Of a stretch of 64,000 bases of DNA, positions 541 through 11,210 are shown one piece after another. The DNA is from Orbicella franksi (lineage: Eukaryota): contig OZ116703.1 of assembly GCA_964199315.1 (NCBI GenBank), positions 310,001 to 374,000 of the forward strand, given 5' to 3'. The notes beneath the pieces are model-generated. The model ran no database searches, was not told the DNA's origin, and worked only from the letters and a program-made list of their open reading frames with translations. How positions within the stretch are numbered: position 1 is the stretch's first letter; every line of letters starts with the position of its first letter. Both the position numbers and the translations under genes were made by a program.

Positions 541-1450
541 TAGGGTGTCACGAAAACTCAGACCCCGAAAACTCAGACCTCAGACCCCGAAAACTCAGAC
601 CCCTCGAAATTAAAAACTCAATTGTTATCACCTGAATTGCTCTACGGTCACGCAATGTTAATAGGCAACAGCCACGCTGGAGCGTAAAGGTAAAAACACG
701 TAAAAATTCAACACGTAGAAAACACGTAAAGGTCGAACCGATTGAACCGCCATGTCTGGTCTAGAAATGTGAGCGAACGAAAATTGAAAATTGGCGCGAA
801 GGCCCCGCCGCGAGGCAGATTTAATAAACTAAACCAGGCGGTATCATGAGAAAAAAAAATAGAAGTGTTTGGTTTTAAACTTACTGTTTCCTGTAAGAAA
901 TATTCACTATTCCCGTTATAAGTTGGAACGCAAACATGGCTATCTCTATGGACTCTTTTTTTCTCTTTTCTTTTTTTTTTTTTTCTCTAAATTTGTTAAT
1001 TTCTGCGGGTTGCGTGCCGACAGTCACGCAACGCACATAAAGTCAAAAAGCAGATTGCAATGAAATCTCCGTGTTTTCACTTTAAGCTCAAACGAGTATG
1101 TTTCAGAGAACAACAAATTTTTTTTGCTGCCTACGATTACATAAAAAAGGTCTGTTTTGAAGAACAGTGTCGGCTGCTGTTCTAAACCTTGTTAGTGTTT
1201 CACCGTTTGACCGACGCGAGAGCGATAATCCTGAGAAGTTAAATATTTGTTTTTCACTGTTCGATCGACGCGACCACATAGACCGGATAAGATAAAAATC
1301 TCGCCCCATTGTGGCCGTAAAGCAATTCAGGTGATAACAATTGAGTTTTTAATCTCGAGGGGTCTGAGGTTTCGGGGTCTGAGTTTTCGGGGTCTCAGGT
1401 CCGAGGTCTGAGGTCTGAGTTTTCGGGGTCTAAGCTTTCGTGACACCCTA
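541..1450. mobile_element. Non-autonomous TIR element (MITE-like, 910 bp) with long inverted repeats
   Basis: Left TAGGGTGTCACGAAAACTCAGACCCCG...GAATTGCT (541-~651) is the reverse complement of right AGCAATTCAGG...TTTCGTGACACCCTA (~1321-1450). The arms contain GACCCCGAAAACTCA sub-repeats. Direct repeat CTTTA flanks both ends (536-540, 1451-1455). No internal transposase ORF. Confidence 0.85.
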
Positions 1451-1529
1451 CTTTATGTCGCGTCGCCCAATAAACAGATTATATAACGCCTTTGTGATGA
1501 GAAAAATATTATTTACGAACTGATAGACC

Positions 1530-4500
1530 ATGAATCGCGTTAAACCAGGGAAAGCATTTGTCATTGGTGTTCTTACGGTTGGACTTTGGGTAATATTAGT
1601 CGTCGTTTATCTGTTTAGCCGTCAGAAAACCATTCCTAATGTGGCGTCTTTTCAAAATCAGTCCACATCTACAAGTGGGACAATTGTTGACCTGTTAGAG
1701 AGCAGCCGGTCGAAAGATCATTACAACATTAACAGACATTTCGAGCTCGAAGATATTCTGAAGGGTTTGAACAAGCATACTTGGGAAAGGTACTGTCAGA
1801 GCGGCTTAGAACAACTATGCAATTATCCAATTTTTCCTAAAGCGCCTGATAAAAGGAATTTTGTTCAGAATGTTAACATCATGTCTACGGTTAACGAAGT
1901 TGACGGCGCTGTTCGACTACTGGGCTACGTTCGACCAAATGCAACAGGAGAATATCAATTCTTGGTGACAACAAATGGCTTTGCTGAAGTTTGGCTCAGT
2001 CCCAGCATGAACTGGAAGGACGCTAAGAAAATTGCTTATGGCAAGCCTCAACATCTAAGATCAACGTTAAAGCAACTGTCCTTTGAAGCAATGAAATCCC
2101 AGATTTCGGAGACAGTGAGTTTATTAGCCAGACAGAAATACTATTTCGAAGTGATATATGTTAAAACTGATACGAAAAGTGGCGAACAGTTAATTCAAGT
2201 CGCTTGGAAAAGACCAGACAGAACTGAATTTGAACTAATTGAGGGAGAGTATTTCTCTTTGTACACAGAGGACAGTGACAAGGCTAAATTGAAAATCTAC
2301 GACGAAGAGTTGCCAGATGTCCTTGCTTGTGTGGAACTGCGGAGACGATTTGCGAACAAGTACATGAGGCCAGACACGCTTCCTTACTTGTCAAGAGCGG
2401 CAGTGGACAAGACGTTACCACTCTGTGAATATAAACCAAGTTATCTTCTTGATCCTGCGAATTTGCCGCGTGACTTAAAACTGTACCACGGTGTGAAAAA
2501 CGTTCAAAAAACATACACGTATCCATTTCAAAGCATAAGTGGAGTGTTACGGAGTGCAAAGGTTGCGCGGACAGTCAGGAAAACGTTTCTAGCTGAATTG
2601 CCGTTAAGTGATCTTGAAGCATTGTCAATTGTACGCATATACTGTAATGTTATGAAAAGGACGTATTCCAGGTAAGTGAAAAACAGAGACTATTGCGTTA
2701 GTCCGGTGAAAGGTTTTAGTTATGACATGCTGAGAATAACCCCGGGGGATCTCTGCAAAGCTTTTTAAGGGGAGGCCGCGCTCCGGGGCTCAACCCCATA
2801 TTCGTTTGTATGCTATTTAGACACTGCATCCCTTTTCTAAACCCTTGGAATGAAGTTGATGAACGATTTTACGGGAGAACATCAGAAATTACCGGATACA
2901 GCCACAAGGTGTGTCTGTTCGAAATGTATCTTAATTAAAGGCCCTTTTAAAAACATAACTGACAGATTTCCCTACCCTTTCGTATACCTAGCCTCAACTT
3001 ATGAAATCCCTGTCCTTTTATATACCTGAAGCCTGAAAAAGATACCCCTTTCGTGGGCAGCTTCCCCGTGTGGGCCATTATAGGGAGCACCGCCCGGGGA
3101 ATAACCCTATGATGTCATCAAGTGCTGATCAATGATATCCATCAGAACCTCTTATTTTTTTTTTAATTACAACGTATTTCGCTCTGTAAGTCTAGATAAA
3201 CTAAATAATTTATGTAATCAGAAGCAAGGTGTTTAGACTGAGATCCTATCGTACGAGGGGCATTTTGGTAGATAGCATGAGTCTTGGTATCATGCCTTTT
3301 TCTTCAAACAACAACAACAACAAAACAATAGAAAAGTATCAGGTCTGGAAGGAAAGACGACGAGAAAATAGGAGGGACGGTATACAAAACATGCGAGGAA
3401 GCTCCTGAAGGCAACCAACAACGCTCAACTTACATACGCGCACGCTAGATTGCTAAACTGAGTGCAAACTGCTTCACTGAAACAAAGGAAATAGTAACCG
3501 TCATGCGCACGCCAGCTGGAGAATTCTTTTAAGAATTAAAAGTAATATTATATTTTTCTGAAGTCATCTTTCTTCTGCAGGAAATACGAACTGCAGTCCA
3601 TTAAACGCGTAGAAAAGAAAGAAGATCCTGAACATGGAAGCAGATATCTCCTTGAGCTTGTAGTCAGAGATCTTATCAATGGCACCAACTATAATTTGGC
3701 AGAATATGTATTCCAACCGCGAGGTAAACACGATTCTTTGTGTTACCCCAAGGGCCTGCTGTGGGACAGGACAGCGGATGTTTATCTTATCCTCACGGCC
3801 AAGAACCTGGGTCGATGGGTTCATCATTTCATCAAGAACGTAGAACAAATTGTTCAAGAAACGAATGATGAACATTTACATGCGGTCATTTTTGACTTTG
3901 ATAGCCCCGATATTGATCTAGAACAGGCTTTCAAGAGGAGCACTCTGAAGAACTACCATTTTATCACACAGCCTGGAAACTATTCTCGTACAGTTTCCTT
4001 TAGCAAAGCGATAGAGTCGATAAAAAACCCTGACGCCATTATTGTCACCATAGACATGCATCTTGACATTGGAAGTCAGCTGATCAACGACATACGTAAG
4101 GTAACTTGTGGGGAAGGGAGAGAAGGTGACTCGGTAAAACATGTCCGGGAATTAAGGAAGAGAGCAAAAGGAACTAGCGTGATTAGAACGCGGTCAAAGG
4201 AATAACTTACATGGCAGGGACACCCCAGCCCTAAGGGTTGCCTTATTCAGAGCTGCCTTATAAAAAAGTATAAGTTTGTATGCACATCATTAGGAAATTC
4301 AGAAAAGTACTCTATTGTTTAAGTGATTAATGAAAATAAAAACGATCTTCCGTTGCCAGGATTGGCAAGTTCGAAAATTGCAGCCAAAACATCAATAATT
4401 CTACTAAAGGTCTAAAGAACATTGTCATAAATGACTAAGAGTCAAACTTCTTTTGAATTATTCACTCGAAACGAGGTTTTAATACATATAATTGGTAAGT

Positions 4501-4995
4501 TGGCAGCCATTTAAAAAAGGTTCTATAACAACTAAATGCTGGATGCCGCAAGTAAACATACGTGCTCGTGCATACAAGAATGTATGTCTTCTTGCGACAC
4601 TTTTTGTCCAGAGATTTGGTCATTCATTTTCCTTTTTTTTTTTGTAATTGACTTTTCAGCACTGCATCAAAGGAAAAACACTGTACGCTCCTCAAATAGT
4701 TCGTCTAAGTTGTGGCGGAAGCAGTGTCATTCCCAACGGCCACTGGTTCCATTATAGCTATGGAACAGTAGCAGTGTACAAAGCAGATTGGGAGAAATTT
4801 GGAGGATTTTCAACACGTTTCGACAACAAAGTCACGTGGGGAGGTGAAGACTGGGACATAATTGACGGTGCGGTCAAGGGTGGCTTGGAAATAGAACGGA
4901 AACGCTCTCCAGCTGTTTACCATTATTATCACACCAAAGCAGGAATGTGGCTGAAAGCAAAGAGGGCTACTAAAGGAACGTCAGGAAAAAAATAA
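1530..4995 (+). CDS. Beta-1,4-N-acetylgalactosaminyltransferase 3/4-like (type II TM, PA14-like domain, GT-A domain), paralog 1, 665 aa
   Basis: Exons 1530-2671, 3581-4100, 4660-4995 (phases 2, 0; 1998 nt). N-terminal TM AFVIGVLTVGLWVILVVVYLF. Motifs DMH (DxH), WGGEDW, ERKRSPAVYHYYHTKAGMW match the B4GALNT3/4 C-terminus (WGGEDW...HHFHSKRGMW). Confidence 0.85.
2741..3098. mobile_element. Non-autonomous element with CCCGGG termini in intron 1 of B4GALNT paralog 1
   Basis: Starts CCCGGGGG (2741) and ends CGCCCGGG (3098). Flanked by direct repeat GAATAAC (2734-2740, 3099-3105; extendable to 8-9 bp because of the C run). Superfamily not determined. Confidence 0.7.
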
Positions 4996-7560
4996 GAGTA
5001 GGGACTCTATTGTCTCATTTGTAATAAATTCAGTGGAGGTATAGCTCGTTAGATAGTAAAATAGATAGATGATTAATTTACAGTGGAACCTCTATTGTCC
5101 GTCCATTAACGTGCCACTTAATTCTCTCCAACGAGTCAAACCCAGTCAAACCAGTAGTGACTGAAATAACAAGGTGCGGTCATATAAACGAAGTGATAGA
5201 CAAAAGAAAGGGTTTTACAGTATTTATTTGCAATTCCTTCAATGGAGATCAGACTTGTGAACAACCAACTTGCGAGATGATTTAATTGTATTGCAGAGCC
5301 ATGTCACTTAGTGTGACCAGGTTACAGGGTCATTCGCATTTGATAGGATTGTCATCATTAACAAACCTGTTTAAGTGATTGAACACTTCCTAAGTCCTCG
5401 TCTAAAGTGCGTGTCAAGTAAGTCATTTAAGCTATAGAATTCTTTGTTCAATTGATAATACCCTTCCCGCCCCATCCACTACGTTTTGTTAGGCATAAAA
5501 AAGCATTCCTACTGGTTTCTGGTTTCGTGAGTGATCGATGTGATATTGGCGTGTTCCGTATTCCGTTTATTTCAGTCAAACGATAGCTCTTTCATCGTCA
5601 GCTCTTTCACCTTCACGTCCAATTTAACTTGCTTAAACTATCATGACAGTTGCACAACGCTTTCACATAACAGGTTTGGCCAAAAATGCTTTTTTATCTC
5701 AGTCATGCCAAATTTCTCGTGATCATCAAACAACATCGCATAATCTGACAGAGACGTAATAAATTGCCGCAGTTAGGAATAATGCATGAAATAAAGGATG
5801 CTTGTAACGGAACCCTGTTTATGATTATGTGCTGTGTTTTCTGCAGGGGCACGAAGAAACAGTACATGGTTTGGTAATTTATTGATTGATTAAATTGGCT
5901 CACAACATTAATTCAGGAGGTCAAGAGACCCTGCCTTCACTTAGGATTCTTACACAAGCGCACAAAAACGACCAAAATTTTTCCTTTGTCGTCTAAATGT
6001 TAATTTCTCAATGTTACTTTTTTGTTGATGAGCAATTAAAAACTATGGAAACCAACCAATCGAACATTTAAGGTCAAAGCAGACTTGTTTAGTTATGAAA
6101 ACCTCTAATGGGATAAATTATTTTGAGATTGTTAATATTAGCGGACTTAGTAAAAGACTAGTTTGAACAGACTGGGTTACAACAGGCTTTTGTTTGGAGC
6201 TTGTAGTTTGACTGTATGGTTATATACATAATTTCAGAAATCAGAAAACCTCTCCACCCTATTACCCATTTTTTTGCGTTAAACGCAGTCGCTGACAAAG
6301 TGCAATTTTTGCCATTATTTCGGATTCTTGCCTCGAGTAGATTTTTCATATTTTAGCATTTCACAGAAGTCGTTGCGAAGTCGATTGCACTATAAAAAGG
6401 CCAAGTCTCCAGTCTCAGGTAGACGTCACCTACAAGAGCTTTTTTGATTTTCTCCACTAATTATTTTAAGAAGCTTGAAATTAACTGAAAGCGATAAATT
6501 TGATGTGAGATTACAACTTCTGCTGTTTGGTGTACTTCATTTTATTCAGTGATGGTTAAAATTAATCCTTTCATGAGACGTCAAGCAGCTACCTTGTGTC
6601 CGAACTGCGCATGTCAGGGTCACGTTTCTCTAGCGGTGTCCTGATCCTTTAGACCACATTCCAGCTTTAGTGTGAAAATAATGGTAGACCCAGGGGCAAC
6701 GTTTTCTCTCTATTTCCAGGCCACTCTTGACCGCGCCGTCAATAATATCCCAGTCCTCGCCTCCCCACGTAACTTTGTTTGCAAAACGGTTTGAAAATCC
6801 GCCGAATCTCTGCCAGTCCTCTTTGTACATTGCTATTGTTCCATAACTGTAGTGATACCAGACACCTCTGGGTAAAGCGCTGCTTCCACCGCAATTTAGA
6901 AAGACGATTTGGGGAGCATACACCGTCTTTCCTTTAGAACAGTGCTGGAGAGAAAAATAAAAAGATAGTAGTGTAGTTGAATGATTCAGCTAACGTTAAT
7001 GTAAGTGTATAATCTGAAGAGAAGATGGAAGTCAGAAGTCAACACAATTGATAATGGCTAAGATGTGCGACTCTCTTTAGAATGGAATTAGCACCATCTA
7101 CACGTGGCAGCGATTTTATTATTTTGGATACCAGTCGACAAAGTTTCGACTTATCAGGGAAAATAAGAACTTGTCATTGATATCGGCATTGCCGCACAGG
7201 AATGGTGGCTATGTACTCACCTTGCGTATATCGTTAATCAGCTGACTACCAATATCTAGGTGTAGGTCGACAGTGACAAATATGGCGTCAGGTTTCCGTA
7301 TGGACTGCACTGCCCTACTCAAAGAAATTGTACGAGAATAGTTTCCAGGCTGTGTGATAAAATGGTAGTTCTTCAGAGTGCTCCTCTTGAAAGCCTGTTC
7401 TAGATCAATATCGGGGCTATCAAAGTCAAAAATGACCGCATGTAAATGTTCATCATTCGTTTCTTGAACAATTTGTTCTACGTTCTTGATGAAATGATGA
7501 ACCCATCGACCCAGGTTCTTGGCCGTGAGGATAAGATAAACATCCGCTGTCCTGTCCCAC
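3761..7560. repeat. Perfect 232-bp inverted repeat (3761-3992 vs 7329-7560) formed by exon 2 of the two B4GALNT paralogs
   Basis: Checked base by base: 3761-3992 equals the reverse complement of 7329-7560. First mismatches at 3760/7561 and 3993/7328. Confidence 0.95.
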
Positions 7561-7867
7561 TGCAGGCCCTTAGGATAGCATAAACGGGCGTTTTCACCTT
7601 TTGGTTGGAATACGTATTCTGCCAATATATAGCTCGCACCAGTGGTTAGATCTTTAACTTCAAGTTCAAGAAAATATCTGCTTCCTTTTTTGGGATCTTC
7701 TTTCTTCTCAACGCGAATAATGGATTTAAGCTCGTACTTCCTGTAGAGCAAAAGTAGAATTTGAGAAAAACAGAGAACAAAACCGGTTGGGTTTGGAATC
7801 CTTTTTCAGCCAATCGCGAACATTGTACAAAGCAGTCACGCCCCACTCAGGGGACTCCAAGCGTTTT

Positions 7868-7898
<31 letters not shown>

Positions 7899-9327
7899 GT
7901 AATCAAGGTAAGTGTTGTCAGTGCCATCTGCATCGCCTGATTGCACTTTACCTGAGTATTCTGGATATATCGAGAAAACTCATTCGTAATTGTTTATTAA
8001 CAGAATGGAGATATAGCCAAATAAAAAGAGGTAACAAAAACCCAAACTCGGTACTTATCTGTGTAAATGACAAAATTAATATATGAAAAATATACAAATA
8101 AATCCCCCAATAAAACGATAAATAAACAAACTATATAATTACCTAATTAGAACGAAAATCTTTGGTAGAATGGACAGCTTCAAAACTGTAACAATGTCAA
8201 AATTCTTACCCAGGGTAACTCTCCTCAATAGCTTCTATGTATCTCTCCACTACAGACCACGCCTCTTGTTCTTCTAACGGATTTTCAGCCCAGAAAACTG
8301 GATGGGCTTTTTGATTCCTTACGACGCCATCAATATTTGGATATGGGAAGCTTGTCGTTTGATGGACATGTTTTGTCACGCCATTATAGACTTGGAATTT
8401 AGATAGTTTATCGAAATTATCAGGTTCGAGAAGATAACTCGGTCTGTAATCACAAAAATCTAGCGTCCTGTTAACCGCTCTATTTTCTAAACTGGGATAA
8501 ATCGGTGGCCTCATGTACTTGTTGGCGTAGCCTTTTCGATATTTGGCACAACAATGAGCCTCTGGTAATTCATCGTCAAACATTTTGTACTGTGCCTTCT
8601 CGCTGTCATTTGTGTAGAGTGAAAGCGACTCGCCTTCAATAATCTCAAACATAGACTTCCCTGGTCTTTTCCAAGCGACCTGAAGAAAGCTCTCGCCTGT
8701 TTTTCGAGCGCCAACAGAATATATTATCTCAATGAAGTATCGCTTCCTCGCTTTTAAATAAATTCTCGTCGAAATCTGAGATTTTAAAGATTCAAAGTCC
8801 CATTTCTTGATCGTTGATGGTACATCTTGCGGGCTGATATAAGCAACTTGCTTTGCTGCCCTCCAACTCTTTATCGGGCTGAGCCAAACTTCAGAAAAAC
8901 CATTTGAAACAACAGCGAAATGATAATCGCCAGATAAATTGGGAAGCAAATAACCAATAAGTCGGTGCCCATCCACGCCACGATTTTTTGGAGCTATAAT
9001 TTCGGTTCGAAAAATGATTTGTCTTCTATCCGGTGCTTTTGGAAAGACTGGAAAATTACAAAGTGTCTCAATGGTCTTTACGCAGTTGTTTTCCCAAACA
9101 TGGTGGTTTAATCCCTTCGGTGAGTGAAGCACATTGTCCTCTTTGTCGGTGGCTGTATCTTCCAAGAAAGACAACCGCTCTAGAGAAACGACCAAACTGT
9201 TTTTGAGTTTTGTCGGATTTGGAAAACATTCTCGCCGGCCAAAAAGGCAAACATCTGTCAAAATTAGACCAAAACAGACAACAACTACGGCAACAACCAC
9301 CGCCAACTTTAACGTTGAAAGATTCAT
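6630..9327 (-). CDS. Beta-1,4-N-acetylgalactosaminyltransferase 3/4-like, paralog 2, 650 aa
   Basis: Exons 9327-8210, 7740-7221, 6944-6630 (phases 2, 0; 1953 nt). Same intron positions and same 520-nt exon 2 as paralog 1. TM LAVVVAVVVVCFGLIL; DLH; WGGEDW; HYFHTKAGMW. Confidence 0.85.
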
Positions 9328-9730
9328 TTCGTGAAGATAAAAAGCAATATTATCAGCTGGGATTGAAGCGAAGTAGCGAATGTCGAGTGTCGATCGAAAA
9401 TCACAGGAGCAACAGTGATACTAGCTCAGCTTCAAACCGTCACCGAATATTGAGTGTTTTGTATTTGCAACCAAGGAGTAACGGTTGCTAGTCGAGAAAA
9501 ATATATAAAATGAACACCAGCAGTAACTAAACCGTTGTATGAATGCTTGTCGGTTAGGACTAATCAGCAATGACGGATGAATTATTCCAAAATATTTCTT
9601 TAATCTATTTTATTCAGTTTAGTTACATATATATTATGTATTCCTCGCATACTCAGCAGAAGAAGACCTATTAAGTATAACTAAATAAATAAGTCACGCC
9701 CTTATTTTTGAATGATAGCACGTTCAGTCA

Positions 9731-9744
9731 GTTACCCGGGTAAC
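9731..9744. promoter_or_regulatory. Candidate RFX X-box (perfect palindrome GTTACCCGGGTAAC)
   Basis: Fits GTYNCY-N2-RGNAAC, about 400 bp upstream of the paralog 2 ATG. Function untested. Confidence 0.3.
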
Positions 9745-11210
9745 AGTGTCTCATCTCGGCAAAACAATTGCAAGCTCTGACAACAGAGAAGGTAGACGCT
9801 AGATAAAATGGTGTACAAAATACACACGTTCAGTTCATGCGGCACGATTTCGAGTTAGTTTACTGTTAGTTGATATTTTTCTACTGGGAGATTGACTGAA
9901 TCAACGTGATCAATATTAGGGGGTCAATAAAATTAAATGCATTTTGATTTAAAACAAAAATAGCTACGTATAGTGTCGATGAATTCTGTTGTATGAGTGG
10001 AAGGCAATTTATTCGTTATTTCCTCGAGGTCCTTTGTAAATGTTGTAGTTTACAGTGACTTCAAATCGAAATCAGCCCCCCTCTGAGTCATCCATCCGGG
10101 GACAATGATAATTTGGTCTGTTGAATCTGTTTTTTGTATTGGCTTTTGCAGAAGAATGTCATGTTACACACGAAAAGAGATGCTTTTCATAGGCTGAGTC
10201 CTCTCAGGCTATATTCTTTTAGGCTTCACTTACCTTCCCCTTTCTAAATTGTTTGTCTCTTAGTGTTACAGAGCCTGAATTAATTTTATTCTTACTCAAT
10301 TACAATCAGCTTCAGGTGAAAGTTAAGCCGTCGTTACACTTTGAGGAGAGACTAATTTGCCATGTGAAAGCTAGAATGGAGTCAAGAGGCAGTGTGAGAG
10401 TAGTCTAGTGCAGGTGTATATTCACTGTTCTATATGTTCACGGCATGTAATGATGGCTGACTAAATTACTTTGGCGCACTCAGGGGAATAAAAGAGAAAT
10501 TAACAAGGCCGAATAAACAATGGGACTCGAGAGCTGGAACAGGCGACGGATTTGCCTTTGCCAAGTATACTTTTATTTGCATATGAGAGTAAATAATCAG
10601 AAGCAATAATTACAAGGGAATGTGATATATCGTAGTCAACAGCAATCTTACAACAAGAACGTACATATCACTTAACACTGCGTTTTCAAAACTAAGTTAA
10701 CATACCCGTATACCTCGTCTCGCTTCAGCGTGTTTAATTTCACAGTCAAATTACAATTAATAGCTACAGTTTAAGGTCGGTGCAAGGTGTTAAAATTTGA
10801 CAACAACCTGCTAAAGATAAACCTGTTTGTTTAGTTAGTTAGCCGATTGCAAATGACCTATATACAAAATGTGGAAAAGTTTGTACGGTATGGAAATCAA
10901 ATGTGCACAACTTCAGGTGTGGTAACCATTTCAGAACTTGGCAAGATCACAATAGACAAGATTACAAAGGATATTGCGGGATATACTACAACCAATAGAG
11001 AAATCAATACCTAGACGAGTATAAACGAAATGCAAGCCTGAAATGCAGACAGCAAATATTCAAACACCGTAATTAATTCGATAATTTCGTGGATAAGAAC
11101 TCATCCGAGCCCTTGCGTCGTGTTCGTCACGGCTTTTCATTTTGAAATCTTATTACTACAAATTGATATACCACTGTAAGAGTTATCCAGGAAAACAAAA
11201 CTCTCTGGCA

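Follow-up and report, generated by a model that had tools for sequence, protein, structure and literature searches.

How two old paralogs whose silent sites have otherwise diverged to saturation can still share part of an exon without a single difference is the question raised by a pair of predicted glycosyltransferase genes in a 64,000-nucleotide stretch of the coral Orbicella franksi (contig OZ116703.1 of assembly GCA_964199315.1, positions 310,001 to 374,000; hereafter the window, in whose coordinates all positions are given). The two genes, which we call A and B, are intact convergent three-exon paralogs that lie tail to tail, with both frames open. Direct comparison of their second exons showed that 232 of 232 bases of 3761–3992 equal the reverse complement of 7329–7560, the first mismatches on either side being at 3760 and 3993. 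An earlier note, made from the DNA letters only, had read this tract as a product of gene conversion between inverted paralogs. We conclude, with a probability of about 0.88, that recurrent, non-reciprocal interlocus gene conversion maintains the identity of the 232-bp island in exon 2 of these ancient paralogs. The elements in question are as follows:

3761..3992, + strand: identity tract, gene A copy; 232 nt, 232/232 identity; recovered as a 232-nt contig of its own at about twice the flank depth in sequencing run X6
7329..7560, - strand: identity tract, gene B copy; 232/232 identity; contigs break 30 nt inside each border
3993..7328, no strand: spacer between the inverted tracts; 3336 nt; coordinates from the tract comparison and the gene models

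The tract comprises the last base of one codon and 77 whole codons (W D R T ... Y S R T) and, as the earlier note had claimed, every synonymous site in it agrees: 0 of 78 third codon positions differ within the tract vs 43 of 95 outside it (hypergeometric probability 2e-14). It is embedded in a longer inverted repeat, which a repeat search placed at 3569–4102 and 7219–7752 (534 nt, 86% complementary) and whose 75 mismatches all fall outside the tract, 46 in the 192 nt to its left and 29 in the 110 nt to its right. The remainder of exon 2 differs between the genes at 72 of 287 bases, and the peptide differences that had been reported for the flanks (KRVEKKEDPEHG vs IRVEKKEDPKKG) are correct on translation. 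When the 72 mismatches of exon 2 were shuffled over its 519 sites, the longest identical run in 200,000 permutations was 95 nt, vs 232 observed, and an analytic bound on the probability of a 232-nt run by chance is 2e-19. This bound and the contrast at third positions rule out chance as the source of the identity.

Divergence between genes A and B was estimated for each region by the Nei–Gojobori method (NG86), as synonymous (dS) and nonsynonymous (dN) distances:

Exon 1: dS 2.06, dN 0.50
Exon 2, left of the tract: dS 1.06, dN 0.16
Tract: dS 0, dN 0
Exon 2, right of the tract: dS 2.39, dN 0.15
Exon 3: dS 1.58, dN 0.16

On these estimates synonymous divergence is saturated everywhere but in the tract, and dS is far from equally low over the whole of exon 2, since the value of 0 in the tract stands against 1.06 and 2.39 in its flanks. 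Exon 1 is indeed strongly diverged, with a protein identity of 44% between A and B in addition to its dS of 2.06, and the impression that the introns do not visibly align is borne out by BLAST, which gave no alignment between the introns or the 3′ flanks of the two genes at E 1e-3. The saturated dS and the non-aligning introns together indicate that the duplication is old and that the tract is a single island within it.

The same locus could be followed in related corals. By protein searches with both first exons, we identified orthologs on long contigs of four long-read assemblies, and in all four relatives a B-type and an A-type gene form a convergent pair as they do here. Exon 2 contains 519 coding bases, without insertions or deletions, in almost all copies, so that the mismatches between the convergent paralogs could be counted over the left 179 nt, the 232 nt of the tract and the right 108 nt:

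This genome: left 43, tract 0, right 29
Relative 1: left 31, tract 2, right 24
Relative 2: left 36, tract 10, right 27
Relative 3: left 42, tract 29, right 30
Relative 4: left 42, tract 21, right 21

The same island is homogenised in three of the four relatives. Its low-divergence borders lie at 3761–3992 here, at 3738–3997 in relative 1 and at about 3762–3988 in relative 2, while relative 4 has an island at about 3753–3884 with a perfect run of 83 nt; the run-length test gave p <= 3e-4 in relatives 1, 2 and 4. Within the tract, paralogs of one species are closer than orthologs of two: paralog dS is 0 here and 0.02–0.04 in relative 1, below the ortholog dS of 0.07–0.16 between these species. 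Moreover, species-specific substitutions are held in common by paralogs, in relative 1 by all three of them at 3809C, 3884A and 3890C and by the convergent pair only at 3780A and 3911C, and in relative 2 by the convergent pair at five sites.

Maximum-likelihood trees of the tract and of the flanks from the five species tell two different histories. In the flank tree, A-type and B-type sequences are split in 88% of bootstraps, whereas in the tract tree the two types are mixed and the three paralogs of relative 1 cluster. Approximately unbiased (AU) tests, for which the A and B groups were set on the basis of exon 1 and the flanks once the distance tables were known, rejected a B-type clade for the tract (p 0.0006 with all six, 0.0004 with the four closest) and species clusters for the flanks (p <= 6e-6). 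We favor conversion over constraint because, in the tract, paralogs are closer than orthologs, derived sites are shared by the paralogs of one species, and synonymous sites change freely among distant orthologs; the trees agree with this. The dS of 0 against saturated surroundings, the incongruent trees over five species and the collapse of the tract at double depth described below all uphold the conversion between inverted paralogs that the earlier note had proposed.

A perfect identity with sharp borders is also what a mistaken polishing step could yield, by pasting the sequence of one paralog over the other in the consensus. We addressed this issue with Logan contigs (k=31) of three DNA runs (X1, X3, and X6), which come from three studies under three organism labels and each differ from the window at other sites, and compared them with 3300–7900. 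In X6, the contigs cover 3336–3790, then, separately, exactly 3761–3992, then 3963–5269, and on the other side 6724–7358 and 7531–7856; the overlaps at the tract borders measure 30 nt, that is k minus 1, which means that the de Bruijn graph has merged exactly these 232 nt into one node of two copies. All three runs have contigs that stop at 7358, those of X6 and X3 restart at 7531, and the X3 contigs listed break where those of X6 do, at all four places. The tract contig has a depth of 96.5 in X6, vs 39–48 for the flank contigs, and of 18.5 in X1, vs about 10 for the flanks. One X1 contig covers 3963–7358 in the order of the reference, and no contig crosses a whole tract.

The identity of the tract is thus real in the organism and is seen in independent individuals; paralog-specific bases within the tract, the mark of a consensus artefact, were not seen in these independent k=31 contigs. 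The only variant in the X1 tract contig is 7416 G>A (3905 in gene A), and its depth of 18.5, vs about 20 expected for two copies, fits either a variant that every copy carries or a popped bubble; it would also fit a variant carried by only half of the copies, so that in some individuals the two tracts may not be fully identical. Three independent runs whose contigs break exactly 30 nt inside the four tract borders, with the tract at nearly double depth in X1 and X6, are hard to reconcile with mis-polishing. In addition, reads from flanks that are 25% diverged would not cross-map, and the island is present in other long-read assemblies (three of the four relatives). On the evidence of the independent contigs we rejected an assembly or polishing artefact, which we regard as scarcely credible.

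Selection acting on the nucleotides themselves, through an embedded RNA or regulatory element or through extreme codon constraint, might keep two copies alike without any exchange. The tract does encode the most conserved peptide of the family, with a dN 2–3 times lower than that of the flanks, and part of this peptide, NLGRWVHHFIKNVE, is identical even in a distant paralog on contig C15. However, the tract dS among distant orthologs is 0.4–0.7, like that of the flanks, which shows that its synonymous sites are free to change and that constraint alone is insufficient; the C15 paralog differs at 83 of the 232 tract bases; and constraint cannot account for species-specific changes that paralogs have in common. 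No Rfam family matches 1000–10000. Synonymous constraint or an embedded RNA was rejected on these three grounds (the normal distant dS, the 83/232 differences from the C15 paralog, and the lack of an Rfam match), and we consider nucleotide-level selection without exchange very improbable.

A more serious competitor is a single old conversion in the ancestor of this species and of relatives 1 and 2, followed by slow divergence, the perfect identity here being a matter of luck. It would explain why the tract here is the inferred consensus, without a substitution of its own, why the island borders nearly coincide in three species (3761–3992, 3738–3997, and about 3762–3988), and why a third copy of gene B, termed B′, retains the tract with two changes. 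Against it, the derived sites listed above for relative 1 (three in all three paralogs and two more in the convergent pair) and for relative 2 (five) require exchange after speciation, relative 4 has a nested island of its own, and zero differences between A and B, against 5–6 between orthologs over the same period, have a Poisson probability of about 0.004. We therefore hold one ancient event to be unlikely, if less so than artefact or selection.

Several observations weigh against recurrent conversion and temper our confidence in it. Conversion is read here from sequence comparison, and no event has been seen directly. The island was not found in relative 3, where the longest run is 25 nt (p 0.34). 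The guanine plus cytosine (GC) content of third positions is not raised in the tract (0.44 vs 0.40–0.45), so that it carries no signature of GC-biased conversion, and we rejected this form of the process. The tract of this genome equals the all-species consensus and has no derived site of its own common to A and B. The last A–B event may be older than the duplication that gave rise to B′, given that A and B have no tract difference and B′ two (Poisson p 0.13). Finally, the signals of direction conflict: four states common to gene B of relatives 2 and 3 are of A type in gene B here and in that of relative 1, which hints at transfer from A to B, and site 3989 hints at the opposite direction. A role of gene B as donor had also been considered from B′ and was dropped, since the A orthologs of other species have the same tract.

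Recurrent conversion could operate at this locus as follows. Repair of a break in one copy would use the inverted copy, which lies 3.3 kb away, as its template and would proceed through synthesis-dependent strand annealing or a short heteroduplex. With flanks diverged by about 25%, strand exchange would start and resolve only within the island and, as it needs uninterrupted identity, the tract would end at the first diverged bases; each event would then renew the identity that enables the next one. In the island, conversion would be harmless because the peptide is nearly invariant, whereas conversion of the paralog-specific flanks would be impossible or removed by selection.

As to timing, the earlier note had called the tract very recent or recurrent. 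Of the two terms, recurrent is the more apt, as relatives homogenise the same island independently. Since no derived site is available in this genome, timing in it rests on counts, and these (5–6 tract differences between orthologs in the comparison with relative 1 and none between A and B, where about 5.5 would be expected) suggest only that the last homogenisation here postdates the divergence from the closest relative in the sample. The third copy enters at this point:

5240..10763, - strand: duplicated segment with all of gene B, identified by BLAST; its copy B′ lies at G000:C4:26764531-26769945, about 97% identity (L003, L006, L008)

The reading frames of B′ are intact; its exon 1 has 14 amino-acid changes among 21 nucleotide changes, its exon 3 a 6-nt deletion, and its tract two private differences from A and B. 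The possibility that B′ is a haplotig was rejected, because the homology ends sharply on both sides inside a 34-Mb contig (C4) and because runs X6 and X3, from two other individuals, show the C4 junction as a loose end at 5240. In the gene-B contigs of X6 and X3 (5527–7783), 12 of 13 checked differences from the window are B′ states, which indicates that B′ states segregate as alleles of B; either another B haplotype was the source of B′, or exchange between B and B′ continues. The left edge of B′ is the exact end of a young high-copy repeat with at least 270 candidate matches, 40 of which were scored, at 96–100% identity. Copies of this repeat form inverted pairs with a spacing of about 4.1 kb, an arrangement that suggests a DNA transposon with long terminal inverted repeats. 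A repeat of about 190 nt, with more than 2000 candidate matches, begins 10 nt past the right border of the segment.

The earlier note had further proposed that the tracts could mediate inversion of the segment between them. This spacer contains the right part of A exon 2, A intron 2, A exon 3, a 1.6-kb intergenic region, B exon 3, B intron 2 and the right part of B exon 2, and inverted repeats of long uninterrupted identity do face each other on one chromosome (232 nt, 100%, 3336 nt apart). The island might thus act as a recombination hinge, at which an occasional crossover inverts the 3.3-kb spacer, so that the two enzymes trade their C-terminal catalytic halves; we think this doubtful. The parental arrangement, with concordant A-type or B-type halves, is found in all five long-read assemblies, and k=31 contigs have words too short to cross a 232-nt repeat. 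A scan of metagenome contigs with a 29-mer of the tract gave 14 loci, among which one genomic contig of a related coral (L036, identical to L038; European Nucleotide Archive [ENA] ERZ1755870 NODE_8429, 3260 nt) shows, in order, B-type intron 1, B-type left exon 2, the tract, A-type right exon 2, and A-type intron 2, and, where exon 3 is expected, a Sulfotransfer_2 open reading frame on the opposite strand. It is a lone SPAdes contig of 2.6x coverage that crosses the repeat, for which a mis-join is at least as likely as a real recombinant, and it was set aside as unreliable. If the hinge did operate, populations would carry parental and chimeric glycosyltransferases, and this contig would be one such product.

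The gene models on which these comparisons depend are the following:

1530..2671, + strand: gene A exon 1; signal-anchor-like N-terminus and PA14 (Pfam E 4.7e-9); donor GT at 2672–2673, followed by a phase-2 intron
3581..4100, + strand: gene A exon 2; 520 nt; acceptor AG at 3579–3580, donor GT at 4101–4102; aligns to residues 368–540 of homologue P0044
4660..4995, + strand: gene A exon 3; C-terminal catalytic half, including the stop; CHGN E 9.4e-12, Glyco_transf_7C E 4.5e-10
8210..9327, - strand: gene B exon 1; PA14 (Pfam E 3.7e-7); donor GT at 8209–8208
7221..7740, - strand: gene B exon 2; 520 nt; from its open reading frame and alignment to P0044
6630..6944, - strand: gene B exon 3; including the stop; Glyco_transf_7C E 1.6e-11, CHGN E 1.4e-9

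Gene A thus runs to 665 codons on the forward strand, and gene B to 650 codons on the reverse strand, where its exons are read as 9327–8210, 7740–7221, and 6944–6630; every intron in both is GT-AG. Exon junctions were set by alignment to P0044, a spliced homologue of 637 residues from a transcript-like contig, and support for splicing comes from this protein and from a complementary DNA contig of a related coral (L032), in which the three exons are contiguous. No raw read of RNA run X21 was placed on this region, a result that says nothing about expression, and contigs of RNA runs contain 27–42% of the words of 3300–7900, a figure that does not distinguish which of the two genes is expressed. 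Directly upstream of the start codon of gene A, about 0.9 kb is enclosed by nested inverted repeats at 541–651 and 1311–1450 (73 nt at 95%, 49 nt at 94%, and 32 nt at 94%), which resemble the inverted termini of a small transposon.

Genes A and B are predicted to encode paralogous beta-1,4-N-acetylgalactosaminyltransferases of the PA14 plus CHGN/GT7 type, similar to B4GALNT3/4. PA14 (PF07691) scored above the curated cut-off in both genes, exon 3 of both matches PF05679 (CHGN) and PF02709 (Glyco_transf_7C), and a Pfam search with exon 2 alone gave no match. Full-length homologues have the architecture PA14 + CHGN + GT7C; in one of them, P0044, the CHGN match extends over residues 352–633, and those of Acropora and Montipora carry the NCBI name beta-1,4-N-acetylgalactosaminyltransferase 3-like. 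As regards a putative type II membrane topology, both exon-1 reading frames begin with a short basic N-terminus followed by a hydrophobic stretch, as read from the translations. The family shares PA14, the CHGN/Glyco_transf_7C region, and a DxH at the position of the DxD motif with B4GALNT3 and B4GALNT4 (LacdiNAc synthases) and with the N-acetylgalactosamine-transferase domain of chondroitin synthases; in corals it has expanded. Compared with the named acroporid proteins, exon 1 of A and B is only about 45% identical, and the transfer of N-acetylgalactosamine in beta-1,4 linkage to N-acetylglucosamine by A and B is putative.

The position of the tract within the protein is also of interest. 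Exon 2 of gene A encodes a beta-strand stem, followed by the GT-A catalytic domain in its N-terminal half, as far as the DxH, whose codons at 4053–4061 (DMH in gene A, DLH in gene B) lie 20 codons past the tract; the claim that the tract is limited to the N-terminal part of the GT-A fold and ends before this motif is therefore sound. The closest solved structure by sequence is that of chondroitin sulfate synthase 3 (CHSY3), and the DLH of P0044 (IDLHLD) aligns to its DVD motif, so that the DMH of A and the DLH of B, which correspond to the DLH of P0044, are predicted to occupy the metal-binding position of DxD type. A model of the catalytic region of a homologue, with a predicted local distance difference test (pLDDT) score of only 58.7, matched best CHSY3-CHPF (E 5e-12) and then many GT-A enzymes; given this low confidence, it was used only for placing secondary-structure elements and confirming the GT-A family. 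In this model, the tract covers a strand-helix-strand-helix-strand series and the beginning of the next helix, and is predicted to encode the nucleotide-sugar-binding half of the GT-A fold.

The A-type genes vary in number among these corals. In relatives 1 and 2 there is a tandem of two, A and A2, of which A2 is the one convergent to B; exon 1 of A2 is only 67% identical to that of A in relative 1, and exons 2–3 are 92–94% identical in relatives 1 and 2. This genome has a single A-type gene, whose 5′ part and introns match the A of the relatives, and the sequence past about 5106 matches their A2–B intergenic region (1437–6436 compared with L014, L017, L015, and L018). A deletion between A and A2 could explain this pattern; sequence may also be exchanged between tandem A-type genes. 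In relative 2, a 21.9-kb contig labelled circular (L016; ENA ERZ25067879 ctg69101) carries an exon 3, a second exon 1, and then a full A-type gene, a structure that suggests either that the A-type genes form a tandem array or that the assembly loops there. Contigs from two samples, L025 (Ga0099801_1467996) and L035 (Ga0126338_10035352), join a piece that matches the first 352 nt of exon 1 at 75% identity to exon 2 from its position 200 (3780, within the tract), the two being 17 nt apart in L025, and probably represent a truncated extra copy in a relative.

In kind, the case of genes A and B is an ordinary one, as interlocus conversion of adjacent paralogs, inverted ones included, is already well described. 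The human RHD and RHCE genes are tail-to-tail paralogs, a few kb to tens of kb apart, in which segmental non-reciprocal transfer produces hybrid exons; they are young, about 97% identical throughout, and their conversion tracts may lie anywhere, whereas only 232 nt of coral A and B are still able to recombine. Adjacent inverted paralogs also convert in Caenorhabditis, in the inverted hsp16 modules and in hsp70-7/hsp70-8, where surviving tracts typically measure 50–200 nt (PMC3966223). Those cases resemble the present one in the opposite orientation of adjacent paralogs, the short tracts, the runs of identity amid diverged flanks, and the comparison with congeners (PMC3966223); unlike them, coral A and B are far older, and their exchange is limited to one exon island and recurs in several species. 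In the copepod Tigriopus californicus, the GOT1 paralogs have islands of conversion and of divergence, read as conversion opposed by selection for divergence (PMC3728101). They too are marine-invertebrate paralogs with a mosaic of homogenised and divergent segments (PMC3728101), and the pattern is reversed: islands of divergence in converting genes for GOT1, an island of identity in diverged genes for coral A and B.

What is distinctive here is that the paralogs are so old, that several species share one recurrently homogenised island, and the setting, as a recent comparison of coral genomes reported gene conversion to be very rare in corals (PMC10236652). Genes A and B provide a clean and multiply tested counter-example to this claim of rarity (PMC10236652). 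Moreover, an island of about 230 bp that is homogenised in at least four species despite saturated surroundings offers a natural system in which to ask what sets the borders of conversion, the candidates being a minimal length of identity, rejection by mismatch repair, and selection on paralog-specific residues. For the expanded glycosyltransferase family of corals, the consequence is that the tract has to be masked before trees are built or duplication ages estimated, as exon 2 will otherwise mislead both.

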